This document shows, one piece after another, positions 57,756-64,000 of a stretch of DNA of 64,000 nucleotides; within the stretch, counting starts at the first letter, position 1; the number at the start of each line of letters is the position of its first letter. Below the pieces are notes generated by a model, which saw only the letters and a list, made by a program, of their open reading frames with translations, ran no database searches and was not told the DNA's origin. The stretch is taken from the NCBI RefSeq assembly GCF_035594765.1, contig NW_026943821.1, positions 20,305,608-20,369,607 on the forward strand, in the 5' to 3' direction. Source of the stretch: Anolis carolinensis (Eukaryota). The translations under genes and the position numbers were made by a program.

Positions 57756-59481
57756 CGCCCAGTCAGAGGCGGACGGAGGGGGAGAGACCACCGGGATGTC
57801 CATCCGCGGAGACCCTCTTTGCCTCAGGCCCTGTCCTCTCCTCTGCCGGAAGTGGAAGGTGGCAGCGCCCTCACACCTGTTGAGAAAGCAGCTTTTTTTT
57901 TTCACCGACACGTGGCGGCTGTGCTTCGCTCTCATGAAGAGGAGATCATCCTTAGTACACCTTTTCCCCCTTTGGCTGCTGTGTTTCGGGGGGAAAGAAG
58001 TAGCAGCAGCAGGTGGCCGGAAGAGGGGTCTGGGTCTGTGACACCTTCTTGCGTGTGTGGATTTTCCTCCAGGTTTTCTTTTTTTTCCCTTTGTGGTGTG
58101 GTTTTTTCTCTCTCCTCTTAAAACATTGACTCTTCACTAAGGTACTTGAGAGAAGAAGGCTTCTTCAGAGGAAGGAAGCCAAAGAAAAAAATAAATAACA
58201 AATCATAACCAAGGAATCTAATCTTGGACGCTTGGGTTCAACTATTTAAAAGATTTCTATTTTTGTTTTGGTTTTGCACATTAATTTTTATTAAAGACTC
58301 TATCCTCTGCCAAAAGCACCACTTTGGCCCACCGTTTATTGTTTTGATTCTTTTTTTGGTCTTTTGGAGCCCCTCTCTTGCCAAAACAAGGATTTGGGGC
58401 AAAGTTTCTTGCTGCTTTTTTTGTCCTCCCCTCCGAGAAAGAGAATATTCCCCATAAACAGACTGCAAGGGAGGAAAAGAAATTGGACCATGCCTTGAGG
58501 AAGAAGAAGAAGAGCTTTTGTGTGTTTGTGCATTTGCATTTGGGGGGGATCCTTTTTCTTTTTGTTGCGGTTGATCTTGGGAGACAAGGCTCCCAACTTG
58601 CCCTCCCAAAGGGATCCATAAGGCATTGAAGGCACACGAAAACTATTCAAAGCACAGCTCCCTCTCCAGGAGGGCTTCCCTTACATTTGCTACTGACTTG
58701 GACTGATTGGGAAAGAAAAGAGAGGAAGGAAAAGCAAAACAAAGTCCCCATCTTGCGTCTTTACTTGAAGAAAACCCGGAGCCTTTCGTTTTCATGTCTT
58801 CATTTGGGATTGTCCACCCCCACCCCCTCCTTTTCTTTGCAGGGACGAACCTCAAATCTCAAAACGGGTCAAAACCTGCCTGTTTTTTTCTCGGAATGAC
58901 CTCCTGCTCGCATTCTGTATCGTGTACATTTTCCTTCAAAATGAAGAAAGTCAAAGCTCTGTATTTTTTATATATTATATATACACACGTTAGATATTTG
59001 TCTAATTCGGTCTCCGGAGGGGGAGAGAAACTAATCCTTCTCATGAGATCCTGTGTGGAAGCAGGCCTTGCCTAGGAACATGGCTCTGGCAAAAAGAAAA
59101 AAGAAACTTTTATTTCTCTTGTGTTCCTGTCTTTGCCTACTCTTTGAGCCCCCAAATACATTCAGTTTCCTCCAACCCGGTTGCAATTGCTGGTCCGACT
59201 CGAGCAGAAAGCAGGAGACTCTTCGGGTGATGATAGATTTGGGATAATTATATATATTTGGGATGGGGACGGTCCCTTTGGTTGTCTTCATGTCTTTCCT
59301 TGTGCTCCAAAGGTTGAAACCTGGGCTCCCAAAACTTTCAAGAACAGATCTGATAATACAAGCAGGTGATACGTGGCGGTGTATCATCATAAGCCTCTGG
59401 CTGTATTTTGTAATAGAGAGAGATGCTTTCATTGTTTAAAAAGAAATGAAATAGAAAAAAAAACAAATGCCAAGGAAATTT

Positions 59482-59487
59482 AATAAA
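59482..59487 (+). terminator. KPNA6: KPNA6 candidate distal polyadenylation signal
   Basis: AATAAA at the end of a ~1.7-kb repeat-free 3' UTR-like region; a proximal AATAAA lies at about 58190. Confidence 0.55.
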
Positions 59488-59855
59488 CGACATCTCTGCA
59501 TTCGGTGACTGCAATCCCAGTGTGACTGGAGGTTTCCCTTAATATGGCCAGCTGCGTCTTAACACTATTATTGATGTTTCAGAATAGCATGAATATTTGA
59601 AATTGACCAGGTTTGGTGTTCTGGAATTAACATTATATCGGTAACAAAATGGATTTCAACAAATGTAGGATGCTTCACATATTTATTTATGGCATTTATA
59701 TCCTGCCCTTCTCACCCGGAAGTGGATTCAGAGTGGCTTACAAGTTATGTGTACATACATTATATTATATTAATAGCATGGCACAATATTAGTATCACAT
59801 ATTGCTATATTGTTCTAAACTACTATACTGCAATATTTAGTCATATTACTGTGTG

Positions 59856-59888
<33 letters not shown>

Positions 59889-60080
59889 TACATATATATA
59901 TAAATGTTGTATTTAAAACATGACGATCATATATATAACAATATATTAGCAAAGCACGATACAGTATTAGTATTATATATTACTATATTGCACTAAACCA
60001 CTATACTGCAATATTATTAGTAATATTACATGTAATATATAATTATATTTTATTTGTATTATATGATCAATATGATATGT

Positions 60081-60339
60081 AAGGTAAAGGTTTCCCCTGA
60101 CGTTAAGTCCAGTCATGTCTGACTCTGGGGGTTGGTGCTTATCTCCATTTCTAAGCCGAAGAGCCAGCGTTGTCCGTAGACACCTCCAAGGTCATGTGGC
60201 CGGCATGACTGCATGGAGCGCCATTACCTTCCTGCCAGAGCGGTACCTATTGATCTACTCACATTGGCATGTTTTCGAACTGCTAGGTTGGCAGAAGCTG
60301 GAGCTAACAGCGGCTGCTCACACCGCTCCCGGGGTTTGA
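60081..60339 (-). mobile_element. Sauria SINE, 5'-truncated
   Basis: Family sequence with (AAAGGT)n end; the head is missing. Confidence 0.85.
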
Positions 60340-60501
60340 TATGTACATGGAATATATTATATTACTAGCATAGCACAATATTAGCATTATATATTACTAT
60401 ACTGTTTACTTATAGTGCACTATTTAAAGTAAATAGTACACTATTTACTTATAGTACACTATTTACATAATATAGCACATATCAGTGTGATGCGCGATAC
60501 A

Positions 60502-60507
60502 TTTATT
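60502..60507 (-). terminator. Candidate polyadenylation signal of the MCC-like gene
   Basis: Minus-strand AATAAA about 355 nt after the stop codon. Confidence 0.5.
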
Positions 60508-60861
60508 ATGATATGGTATTACAGACAGTGTGCCGCAAAGCCATCCTTCCATTACCTTAGCAAATTGGAAGAGCACATTCATAAACACAGCATCCTTTAG
60601 AACAGGCATGGGCCAACTTGGGCTCTAGATGTCCCGGACTTCAACTCCTACTATCCCCAACAGTCCCAGGCCCCCTCTCTTTCCTTTTCCTTTCCTGTTT
60701 AAGGGGGGAAAGAAAAAGGGTCTGAGCCAGCCAGGAATGGTGGTCCCAAGTTGGCCCATGTCTGTTTCAGAATGATGCACTGGTTATTTGAGTTGCATCA
60801 GAACGCAATCAGGTTCCGGCTCCTCCATGAGGCCTTTAAAGATGGCTGCAGCCGCCTTCTT

Positions 60862-62913
60862 TTAGGGTTGCTCTCCTGACCCCTGGATGACCTTTGCCTC
60901 TTGCGGAAGAGTCCGGAAGCTCCCCAAGTCCTGCAGAGTCTGCACCAGGCTCTGCAACTGCAATGCATGGCGGTGACCCATCAGGGACACCTGCCTCTCT
61001 AGCTGCTGCACCTGGGCTTCCTGCTTCAGGCGGGCGTTTCGGAAGGCCGTCCCCAAGGCGCTGTGGGCCTGGAGGAGGTCCCTGGCCAGCTCAGCCTCCT
61101 GCCCGGCCAGGTCCCGGCCCTCCCGGCCCTGCTCCTCCACCTCCAGTAGGAGGGAGCCCAGCCGGCTTCTCAGGGCGTTCTGCCGAAGCAAAGACTGCTG
61201 GAGCTCCATCGCCTGAACTTCTGGGTCTTTGGGCTCTTCCGTCTTGCCTAAGGTTTCCCTTTTGGAACTGACCCTTGGTCCGTATTCCTCTGAGTCACTG
61301 CTGCTGGGACTGCTTTCTCCAGAGGAGAGGGACTGCTGCTGTTTTCCTTGAAGCTCGTCCCGTTCCTCCTGGAGGATGCGCACCATCAGCCGGAAGGCGG
61401 CCTCCTGGGACCGGAGGGTGTAGGTCTGGAGCCCCAGGCACTCCTTCTCCTTCTCCGCCAGGTGCAGCCGGCTCTTTAAGTCCGCCAAGGCCTCCCTGGC
61501 CGCCTGCAGCTCCTGCAGCAAATGCTCCTTCTCCATTGTGAAGGATGTACTTCTGGAAGGAAGGACCACTTGCAAAGCTTGACCTGCCTCTTCTACCTCT
61601 GTGGCCTCAATCCCAGTGTGGCATGGAGGGAGCTTCAGGGCGCGCTGCTCGGCTTTCAGGCACCGGATGTAGCCCCTCAAGAGCTTCTTTCTGTCCCTGT
61701 TCTCCTCCAAAGGGTTCTCTTCAGAGCAGACACTCCCATCGTCCACTCCATTACGGCTCTGCAGGAAATGCTGTGCTTTCTCCATCACGGCCAGCTGCAT
61801 CCGGTGAGGCGAGTCTCTGGGTTTGCCTGCACAAGGAGGTCCTCCTTCATCTTCCCGCTCCACTGCCATCAGTGAAAGCAGAGCTTCATAGGCCTCCAAG
61901 CAGTTTTCGCTATACTGGACAGCCAAGCGCAAGGCGGTGCCACCCGCCTCGCTGCGCCCAAGAGCGAGGCTGATGCGTTCGGCGCGGCCCTTGGTCTCCT
62001 CTAAAGACACCCGCAGGAATCGGTTGAGCTCTTGGAGCCCTCGGATTGATCTGTGTAACCGATCCCTTTGCTCTTCCTGGGGGTCTTTGCCATTGATTTC
62101 TGCTGGAGAAGAGACTTCTTGGGAGGAAAGGCCCGGTGTTGGCTGGATGCTGGCGGCGTTTCGGACACAGCAGAGGAACTTCTGGGTTGCAATGGCCACC
62201 GGATCCTGTTTGCAGAGAGGGCTGGAGGCTGTATCTTGGAGGCCCTCTTCTTCCGCAAGGGCTTCCTGCAATTCCTTGACCTTCCTCCTTAACCGGTCCC
62301 TCTCTTCCTCGTAAACCAAGAGTGTCCCTTTGCAGTGTTGCAGCTCCTCATTCCGGATGCCCAGCTGCTTCTCGAGGGCCGCCTTCCTCTCCCGGCAAAG
62401 GGCCACTTCTTGTCTGTAGACGATGCTCTCTGTCGACAGGAAGTCCAGATTCGGCGCAAAAGATTGCTGACTTTGGCAACCCTTTCGGGACCCCACTGGA
62501 CTTTCACCAAAGTTCTCAGCCACATTGGGACTTTGCTCTGTTCCGGATCCAGCGCTGGGCCGACGGTTGCGGTGAGAGGAGACCGCGTTCTCGAGGGAGG
62601 AGACTGCTTGGAGGGCAGCGAGGAAGAGGTCTGGATGCCTTTTCTCCGGAGGAGGCATCGTCGCTTCCAGGCTCAGAAACGGCACACTGCATCGTGGGAG
62701 GCTTGCTGTATATTCAGAGCAGAGATCAGAAAACTCTTCCTCCTCCTGCTCCCTGTCTTTCTCCCGCTCGAGGCGTTGGAGGTGTTGGTGAAGGCGGGAG
62801 ACCGTCACCAGCAGTGCTGTGATGCGCTCCTCGCAGCGAAGGGCTTCTCGCTCATCTGGTGGCAAAGCCTTTTCGGGGGATCCTTCTTCATCTCTGGATC
62901 CTTCCTGCTCCAT
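60862..62913 (-). CDS. Coding-intronless MCC/USHBP1-family coiled-coil protein (colorectal mutant cancer protein-like), about 683 aa
   Basis: Uninterrupted 2.05-kb ORF. Colinear family motifs: EERITALL..EEEFSDL.SE; LQELNRFLRVSLEETKGRAERIS...TALRLAVQYSENCLEAYEALL; LRGYIRCLKAEQRALKL; LLQELQAAREALADLKSRLHLAEKEK; ARDLLQAHSALGTAF..KQE.Q.QQLERQ. Likely start MEQEGS just after the acceptor-like cttttcag at 62919; the open frame extends up to 63066. Confidence 0.85.
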   Translation of the reverse strand: MEQEGSRDEEGSPEKALPPDEREALRCEERITALLVTVSRLHQHLQRLEREKDREQEEEEFSDLCSEYTASLPRCSVPFLSLEATMPPPEKRHPDLFLAALQAVSSLENAVSSHRNRRPSAGSGTEQSPNVAENFGESPVGSRKGCQSQQSFAPNLDFLSTESIVYRQEVALCRERKAALEKQLGIRNEELQHCKGTLLVYEEERDRLRRKVKELQEALAEEEGLQDTASSPLCKQDPVAIATQKFLCCVRNAASIQPTPGLSSQEVSSPAEINGKDPQEEQRDRLHRSIRGLQELNRFLRVSLEETKGRAERISLALGRSEAGGTALRLAVQYSENCLEAYEALLSLMAVEREDEGGPPCAGKPRDSPHRMQLAVMEKAQHFLQSRNGVDDGSVCSEENPLEENRDRKKLLRGYIRCLKAEQRALKLPPCHTGIEATEVEEAGQALQVVLPSRSTSFTMEKEHLLQELQAAREALADLKSRLHLAEKEKECLGLQTYTLRSQEAAFRLMVRILQEERDELQGKQQQSLSSGESSPSSSDSEEYGPRVSSKRETLGKTEEPKDPEVQAMELQQSLLRQNALRSRLGSLLLEVEEQGREGRDLAGQEAELARDLLQAHSALGTAFRNARLKQEAQVQQLERQVSLMGHRHALQLQSLVQTLQDLGSFRTLPQEAKVIQGSGEQP

Positions 62914-63407
62914 TCTGTCTGAAAAGTGGCTCCAAAGGCGGACAGCAGCATCAAAACAAGCCAAAGCCCAGCCCTTTGGTTCCTGTTTCTTCCCATAATA
63001 ACAATAATAATGAGAAGCCTTTCCTGTCTTTCCAGAGAGGAAGGAAGCCGGCTCCATCCGCACCAATGCTTTAACCCAGGGGTCTCCAAACTTTTTAAAC
63101 GGGGCCAGTTCACAGTCCGTCAGTCCGTTGGAGGGCTGGACTATAGTTGGAAAAACCCTATAAAGAAATTCCTATGCACACTACATATCACTTATTTTGA
63201 AGTAAAAAACAAAAACAAATGGGAACAAATACAGCCTCAATGTTAATAATAATCATAATCATAATAAAAATAATAAAGAGGGTGGGAAGAGATCCCTTGG
63301 GCCATTTAGTCCAATCCCCTTCTACTTTTGTGCACCAAAAGCACAAGCAAAGCACCCCTGACAGATGCCACCAAGCCTCAATGTTGTTGGTAATAATCAT
63401 CATCATT

Positions 63408-63515
63408 ATCATCACATAGTCCTAAACGCTTGGGAAGTGTTCAACTTGTGATTTTGTGATACGAAATCCAGCATATATTTCTCGTTTGCTGTGTTATACT
63501 GTGTCTTTGTGTCAA
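63408..63515 (+). mobile_element. R4/Dong 3' end
   Basis: ATCACATAGTCCTAAACGCTTGGGAAGTGTTC...GTCAATAATAATAAT; same 3' UTR as the 2250 copy. Confidence 0.7.
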
Positions 63516-63524
63516 TAATAATAA

Positions 63525-64000
63525 TCTATATATATAAAAGAGTGATGGCATCATGGCGACCCACAAAACAACAAAACTACAGGCCCCCCAACCTCGAAAT
63601 TTGACAACACAACCCATCATCCATGCCTCTAGGTTGATACAACAAAAAGAAAAGAAAAATAAAGTCCTAATTAGTGAGAGAGGAATAATTGCTTTTATCC
63701 AATTGCTGCCAGTTTAGAGGGCTAATCTCTGTCCACTTGGTCTCCTAGCAACCAACTCAGCCAAGGGACAGCCAGGGTTCAGTTAGGGGACAGGCAGACT
63801 TAGGCTCCTCCAACTTGGTCTCCTAGCAACCCAATAAAAAATAATAAAGAACACTAAAAAAATTAATACAATAAAATACTATAATAACAGAAAATAACTA
63901 AAAATAATACAAGAAAATAATAAAATATGATAAATAAAATATAACTTACAATAAAATTAATAAAAAATGCAAATAAAGTCAAATAAAAATTACACAACAA
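63525..64000 (+). mobile_element. Helitron-like non-autonomous element running off the window edge
   Basis: A|TCTATATATATAAAAGAGTGATGGC start, shared with the 30262 copy. Confidence 0.65.

Follow-up and report, generated by a model that had tools for sequence, protein, structure and literature searches.

A probable USHBP1 retrogene between TXLNA and KPNA6 in Anolis carolinensis, a candidate replacement for its multi-exon parent

The harmonin-binding protein USHBP1 (MCC2) owes its name to the binding of its C-terminus to the PDZ1 domain of harmonin. Orphan retrogenes, which replaced the genes they were copied from, include RNF113A, MARS2, TRMT12 and CHMP1B, and the studies describing them cover genes of humans and other mammals (Ciomborowska et al., 2013, PMC3548309; Carelli et al., 2016, PMC4772013). 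CpG-island promoters were reported for nine of ten orphan retrogenes, and retrocopies lying head-to-head within 2 kb of a neighboring gene use the bidirectional promoter of that neighbor (Carelli et al., 2016, PMC4772013). A literature search found no relevant paper linking USHBP1 to retroposition. Here, we analyzed a 64,000-nucleotide stretch of the genome of the lizard Anolis carolinensis (GCA_035594765.1, JAWQEF010000010.1), hereafter the window, to which all coordinates refer. Its minus strand carries a long open reading frame (ORF) at 60862–62913, which a preliminary description of the DNA, made from the letters alone, had taken for a third member of the MCC/USHBP1 family. We propose that this ORF is anole USHBP1 itself, present as a processed retrogene that was relocated, is constrained and transcribed, and is a probable replacer of its parent, a reading to which we assign a probability of about 0.85.

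The open frame extends from 63066 down to 60862 and contains an internal ATG at 62913. From this ATG, 683 codons and the stop codon TAA (60864–60862) make up 2052 nt free of stops and frameshifts, as the preliminary description had observed. An open frame of 2 kb whose entire translation resembles a known family of proteins is far too unlikely to be due to chance. The Pfam scan gave one match in the translated protein, to PF10506 (USHBP1_PDZ-bd) at residues 285–348 (E = 7e-15). The protein ends in GEQP and, again as first described, has no class I PDZ ligand. Based on the frame, its translation, the Pfam match and the exon collinearity reported below, we regard 60862–62913 on the minus strand as the complete coding sequence of the anole USHBP1 retrogene.

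In a protein search, the window protein matched best to squamate proteins annotated by their sources as harmonin-binding protein USHBP1. The identity is highest for Anolis sagrei (76% over 100% of the query), whose gene already bears the USHBP1 name in its annotation, and amounts to 49% for Sceloporus, 40–45% for other lizards, geckos and snakes, 34–37% for turtles and crocodilians, 31% for tarsier and 25–27% for MCC-type proteins. A protein of about 700 residues with one central PF10506 is the architecture common to the anole, Sceloporus, Pogona, turtle and tarsier. In a maximum-likelihood (ML) tree of 27 proteins, the window gene is sister to the USHBP1 of Sceloporus and Phrynosoma, which is its position in the species tree, with supports of 100/99 for Squamata, 98/99 for Iguania, 100/99 for Anolis plus Phrynosomatidae and 100/100 for the pair of Anolis proteins. 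Judging from these similarities and from the tree, the ORF is the anole USHBP1. The gene falls within the squamate and iguanian USHBP1 proteins with supports of 98–100 and forms no separate clade; with its best matches, this position makes it the USHBP1 orthologue of its species, not the third family member first supposed.

The N-terminal block EE.I..L...EEEFSDL..EYTASLPRC had been described as MCC-like. It is present in all sauropsid USHBP1 proteins that we aligned, and the mammalian protein alone lacks it. The alignment of the anole protein starts at residue 24 with a shark MCC-like protein but only at residue 95 with tarsier USHBP1, which does not align over the N-terminal block; this difference explains the impression of an MCC/USHBP1 chimera. 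Some public models of the family are odd. P0014 from Hemicordylus is a USHBP1 with a transposon-like tail filed as an NR2F6 isoform, P0030 from Platysternon is a USHBP1 that looks misnamed as “lysozyme G-like”, and P0018 from Heteronotia has an unrelated N-terminus and looks mis-built.

The gene structure of USHBP1 in related lizards is very different from that in the anole. The Phrynosoma gene spans 8.8 kb with 14 coding exons and adjoins ANKLE1 and a gene for 255 residues; the Pogona gene spans 7.2 kb, with ANKLE1 and then a gene for 436 residues on one side and NR2F6 on the other; the gene of Elgaria is likewise multi-exon and spans 17 kb. At least 10 separate exons of the Phrynosoma gene align in order, piece by piece, with the anole ORF, and 13 of 13 coding-intron positions of Phrynosoma map inside the uninterrupted anole frame. 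The first intron of the parental type lies just after the start codon, with exon 1 ending in ATGGAGAAG/gta in three species (the slash marks the exon boundary). The anole ATGGAGCAG continues directly into the sequence of the next parental exon, so that the junction of exons 1 and 2 is fused. Phrynosoma and Pogona keep both the multi-exon structure and the ancestral synteny ANKLE1–(BABAM1)–USHBP1–NR2F6, neither of which is found for the anole gene. Its neighbors are a Taxilin-domain gene (TXLNA), head-to-head, and an importin-alpha gene with IBB/Arm domains, tail-to-tail, which we take to be KPNA6 because it adjoins TXLNA, an arrangement also found on the human map; the location given in the preliminary description was thus right. 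Because all 13 introns are absent inside the ORF, we interpret the gene as a processed retrogene at a new locus. Contigs from DNA-like sequencing runs of other studies span the ORF together with both flanks (60376–63099), and the arrangement is therefore a genomic one and not cDNA contamination or an assembly artefact. An old retrogene or intron-stripped paralogue, kept by selection and lost in mammals, had been suggested before. A retrogene under selection is indeed the most likely interpretation, but the nesting within Iguania contradicts both the great age and the loss in mammals.

Upstream of the ATG, about 120 nt (62914–63030, minus strand) weakly resemble the 5′ untranslated regions (UTRs) in exon 1 of the parental-type genes. 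The local-alignment scores exceeded those of shuffled sequences in 500/500, 487/500 and 497/500 trials, and the match is about as strong as that among the parental exon-1 regions themselves. This segment may be a relic of the retroposed 5′ UTR, located upstream of the exon boundary now in use, although the alignments and shuffles are suggestive only.

The comparison within Anolis and the variation within A. carolinensis both point to constraint. A. sagrei has a collinear protein of 694 residues with homologous start and end. Contigs of four runs differ from the reference ORF at 19 sites, with 10 synonymous changes, 9 non-synonymous ones and none that creates a stop, which gives a ratio of non-synonymous to synonymous polymorphism (pN/pS) of 0.28 (binomial p = 0.006 against neutrality). 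Thirteen of these 19 polymorphisms cluster in 340 nt (61531–61868) and are linked in runs X1, X8 and X10, apparently as a divergent haplotype over the poorly conserved middle of the protein. Among the 74 alignment columns that are invariant in 20 other sauropsid proteins, 67 are conserved in one anole and 69 in the other (91–93%), and the leave-one-out retention for the other species is 88–100%. The tip branches of the two anoles in the ML tree (0.15 + 0.11) are comparable to those of Sceloporus and Phrynosoma (0.12 + 0.11), whereas the anole stem branch of 0.58 is about fivefold longer than the phrynosomatid stem of 0.12. The branch lengths suggest that the copy changed rapidly after retroposition and then came under ordinary constraint, and the anole USHBP1 retrogene looks functional.

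For transcription, we inspected contigs assembled from public sequencing runs. The run types are guesses, RNA status being assigned from the size of the contig set and uneven depth, and the contigs give neither strand nor expression level. The contigs of X2 and X10, two runs from different studies, sum to about 80 M letters each, which is transcriptome-sized. X1 is DNA-like, with 1.4 G letters and a flat depth of 23–26x across everything; X8 is also DNA-like and flat, and its contigs also continue past the exon boundary described below. The depth in X2 and X10 is 59–77x at the KPNA6 3′ UTR, where contigs end near 59462–59514, and 5–6x at the retrogene, with nothing unique between the two or upstream. 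Together, the two RNA-like runs cover 60470–62915. At the 3′ side, the retrogene contigs end at 60491 (X2) and 60470 (X10), which is 11–32 nt past the previously noticed AATAAA; this signal lies at 60507–60502, 355 nt 3′ of the stop codon. These ends are probably the poly(A) site, which defines a 3′ UTR at 60470–60861 with a transcript end near 60470–60491.

The 5′ side has an equally defined boundary. The contigs of X2 and X10 both stop exactly at 62915, and bin arithmetic leaves no depth at 62916–63000. The minus strand 5′ of the ATG reads TTTTCAGACAGAATG, in which a short pyrimidine run is followed by two AGs at 62915–62920: the acceptor-like AG reported earlier, 5 nt before the ATG (62920–62919), and a second one 1 nt before it (62916–62915). 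From the sequence and the contig ends, the AG at 62916–62915 is probably a splice acceptor, placing the exon boundary 1–2 nt before the ATG and a non-coding exon further upstream. Transcription starting only 2 nt before the ATG is a less likely alternative.

This boundary also bears on the gene-caller model P0001, which comprises 731 residues and starts with MEPASF. The frame happens to stay open for 48 codons 5′ of the true start (62914–63057), through the former 5′ UTR, which misled the gene caller. All relatives begin with ME[KQ][GE]. Because the RNA-like contigs stop at 62915, and considering the starts of the relatives, the model is probably too long and its in-frame extension probably untranslated.

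A candidate promoter lies past the end of the window, on the retrogene’s side of TXLNA. It is a CpG island of 400 nt (L001 7801–8200, equivalent to window positions 64858–65257) about 2 kb 5′ of the ATG, with a GC content of 0.64, an observed/expected CpG ratio of 0.8–1.4 and three TGACGTCA motifs; the TXLNA coding sequence begins near the window-equivalent position 69030. The TGACGTCA motifs resemble cAMP response elements, and the island also contains a ACTACATTTCCC motif that we presume to be ZNF143-like. The island probably serves as the promoter of TXLNA, and may do so in both directions. Sharing of this promoter by the retrogene would be the most economical model of its transcription. 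A strict donor scan (G/GTRAG, the slash as above) between the CpG island and the ATG yielded no candidate for the upstream exon.

The missing PDZ ligand, which had been thought special to this gene, is a feature of squamates. USHBP1 ends in ETCI or ETFI in turtles and crocodilians and in ETFL in tarsier, but a C-terminal E-T-x-[IL] ligand is found in 0 of about 20 squamate USHBP1 proteins (including P0005–P0015 and P0037–P0042), multi-exon ones among them. The squamate tails read SPAST in lacertids, FPKE in Sceloporus and Phrynosoma, GQPS in Pogona, SSLA in Varanus, LNVK in eublepharid-type geckos, and GEQP or RGQP in anoles. Since the lacertid end ...LEGRAGSPAST aligns with the turtle end ...LEERRVAGSETCI, the tail has been altered rather than mis-annotated. 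As the ligand is missing in all squamates examined, it was lost before the retroposition, and its absence is not peculiar to the anole copy. The sequences suggest that the interaction of this tail with harmonin is dispensable or rewired in this order.

Whether the retrogene stands alone in anoles is a separate question. With Sceloporus USHBP1 as the query, the protein search returned one USHBP1 for nearly every squamate species, about 25 squamates. Two full-length searches of annotated proteins returned only intronless-type proteins, and no parental-type USHBP1, for A. carolinensis and A. sagrei. An annotated parental protein of Anolis would be expected near the top of such a search, since its identity to the Sceloporus query should clearly exceed the 49–50% of the retrogene. 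The protein matches thus lean slightly toward loss of the parental multi-exon USHBP1 in anoles, which would make the retrogene an orphan.

The observations can be joined into the following scenario. In the anole lineage, after the split from phrynosomatids and before the divergence of A. carolinensis and A. sagrei, a fully spliced USHBP1 mRNA, with its 5′ UTR, all coding exons and 3′ UTR, would have been reverse-transcribed into the interval between TXLNA and KPNA6. The copy has stayed open under purifying selection and is transcribed, apparently as a spliced mRNA with an upstream non-coding exon and a coding exon starting 1–2 nt before the ATG. It is probably driven by the CpG-island promoter of its head-to-head neighbor TXLNA or simply located near it, at a distance of about 2 kb. 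The encoded protein, predicted to be a long helical scaffold, carries its single PF10506 in the center and, as in all squamates examined, had already lost the terminal E-T-x-[IL] ligand. Finally, the retrogene would have replaced the multi-exon parent at the ANKLE1–USHBP1–NR2F6 locus and now do the ordinary USHBP1 job as an orphan retrogene. Of this scenario, the identity, the lack of introns, the new location, the constraint and the transcription in RNA-like runs are shown by the data, and the shared promoter, the upstream exon and the lost parent are inferred. We put at even odds the conjunction in which the parent next to NR2F6 was lost and replaced by a retrocopy with a new exon that is driven by the TXLNA CpG island and spliced to an acceptor inside the former 5′ UTR. 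If true, this would be a clean reptile case of an orphan retrogene with promoter capture, on top of the squamate-wide loss of the PDZ ligand.

Several observations weigh against our interpretation or parts of it. The case for parent loss is the absence of annotated proteins and does not extend to the anole ANKLE1–NR2F6 interval itself. A search for relatives of fragment size came back blank, which is uninformative about parent loss. The A. sagrei copy is known as a protein only. X2 and X10 are RNA by guess, their contigs lack strand and level, and they show no joint to an upstream exon. The long anole stem means that the function may have shifted. The homology of the 5′ UTR is weak, and neither a poly(A) relic nor a target-site duplication is recognizable downstream of the AATAAA or in the flanks. 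The anole 3′ UTR cannot be aligned with the parental ones, which cannot be aligned with one another either. The lack of a poly(A) relic or target-site duplication and the unalignable 3′ UTR fit an old insertion, because such absence is expected there.

The alternative with the most to be said for it is an ordinary extra retrogene, in which a working parental USHBP1 persists at the Anolis ANKLE1–NR2F6 locus while the copy diverges toward a new or narrower role. It challenges the orphan status only, and we consider it possible, though on the doubtful side. The parent was sought among annotated proteins, GC-rich microchromosomal genes are often missed by annotation, the blank fragment search says nothing about the parent, and a stem of 0.58 is the pattern of a redundant, neo-functionalizing copy. 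Nevertheless, about 25 squamates yield a USHBP1 where both Anolis species yield the intronless type only, and an intact parental protein, being closer than 49–50%, would rank near the top. One source also names the A. sagrei protein plainly “USHBP1” and not “USHBP1-like”, the two anoles have diverged no faster than the phrynosomatids, and 91–93% of the invariant residues are kept. The fast stem, together with the lack of a poly(A) tail or target-site duplication for dating and the low depth in the RNA-like runs (5–6x against 59–77x at the KPNA6 3′ UTR), could also be read as the mark of a processed pseudogene that is still open by chance and has no function. We find this highly improbable and rejected it on the polymorphism pattern, residue retention and transcription: the frame of 683 codons is intact in two anoles that differ at 24% of protein positions, pN/pS is 0.28 with no nonsense variants, the invariant residues are kept, and the transcribed region has a defined exon boundary and a poly(A) site.

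The remaining two alternatives concern the origin of the copy and are even less probable than a pseudogene. Relocation at the DNA level followed by in-place loss of all introns, for example by gene conversion with a cDNA, would be compatible with the lack of a demonstrable poly(A) tail or target-site duplication. However, at least 13 introns are missing together, among them the one that follows the start codon directly, and the flanking genes are unrelated to the ancestral neighborhood, no part of which was carried to the new site. A single retroposition event explains this signature far better, and we hold the DNA-based route to be barely plausible. As for an ancient third MCC/USHBP1 paralogue, intronless since early vertebrates, kept in squamates and lost in mammals, the MCC-like N-terminal block, with alignment to the shark MCC-like protein from residue 24 and to the tarsier protein from 95, spoke for it, as did the statement in the preliminary description that mammals are not known to have such a gene at this locus. 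The tree nests the gene in Iguania with supports of 98–100, its N-terminal block is shared by every sauropsid USHBP1, other iguanians have only the multi-exon gene at the ancestral locus, and other squamates show no second USHBP1-like lineage except for the Heteronotia “USHBP1-like” model. The tree and the N-terminal comparison led us to reject it, and it is the least credible of all the readings. A processed USHBP1 retrogene in the anole lineage remains the interpretation that we prefer.

The surroundings of the retrogene are rich in repeats. A SINE-like (short interspersed nuclear element) sequence at 60080–60340, appearing at 60001–60400 in the depth bins, lies about 150 nt past the poly(A) site of the retrogene; its summed contig depth reaches millions in DNA-like runs, indicating a very high copy number. 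A second block of very-high-copy repeats (depth up to millions) and AT-rich low-complexity sequence at 63400–64000 sits between the ATG of the retrogene and the TXLNA CpG island. The 1-kb spacer between the tail-to-tail KPNA6 3′ UTR and the retrogene also contains a compound (TA)n/(TG)n microsatellite at 59850–59900.

The analysis removes a false lead, as there is no third MCC/USHBP1 family member at the anole locus. It also provides a reptile example of a retrogene apparently taking over from its parent, a class known mainly from mammals. For Anolis as a model, and for the transfer of regulatory or expression data, it is relevant that the promoter, chromosome and neighborhood of this gene differ from those of USHBP1 elsewhere.

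MCC (mutated in colorectal cancers) has the PF10506 domain and a coiled-coil build in common with the anole protein, their identity being 25–27%. The insect MCC (P0036) differs by its N-terminal EF-hands, a second PF10506 stretch and an ETSL tail, none of which are found in the anole protein. Compared with the USHBP1 of Sceloporus undulatus, Phrynosoma platyrhinos and Pogona vitticeps, the anole gene belongs to the same family and clade and encodes the same single central PF10506, as well as the conserved N-terminal block and the C-terminal AHSAL...KQE block. However, its coding region is intronless where the relatives have at least 13 introns, it lies between TXLNA and KPNA6 instead of ANKLE1 and NR2F6, and it shows an accelerated stem branch and a new 5′ exon boundary just before the ATG. 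From the known orphan retrogenes it differs in belonging to a lizard genus and not to mammals and in a parent loss seen at the level of annotated proteins only. Like RNF113A, MARS2, TRMT12 and CHMP1B, it is intact, constrained and expressed, with no parent found in its lineage (Ciomborowska et al., 2013, PMC3548309; Carelli et al., 2016, PMC4772013), and its head-to-head position, with a CpG-island promoter at a distance of about 2 kb, recalls the retrocopies that use bidirectional promoters (Carelli et al., 2016, PMC4772013).

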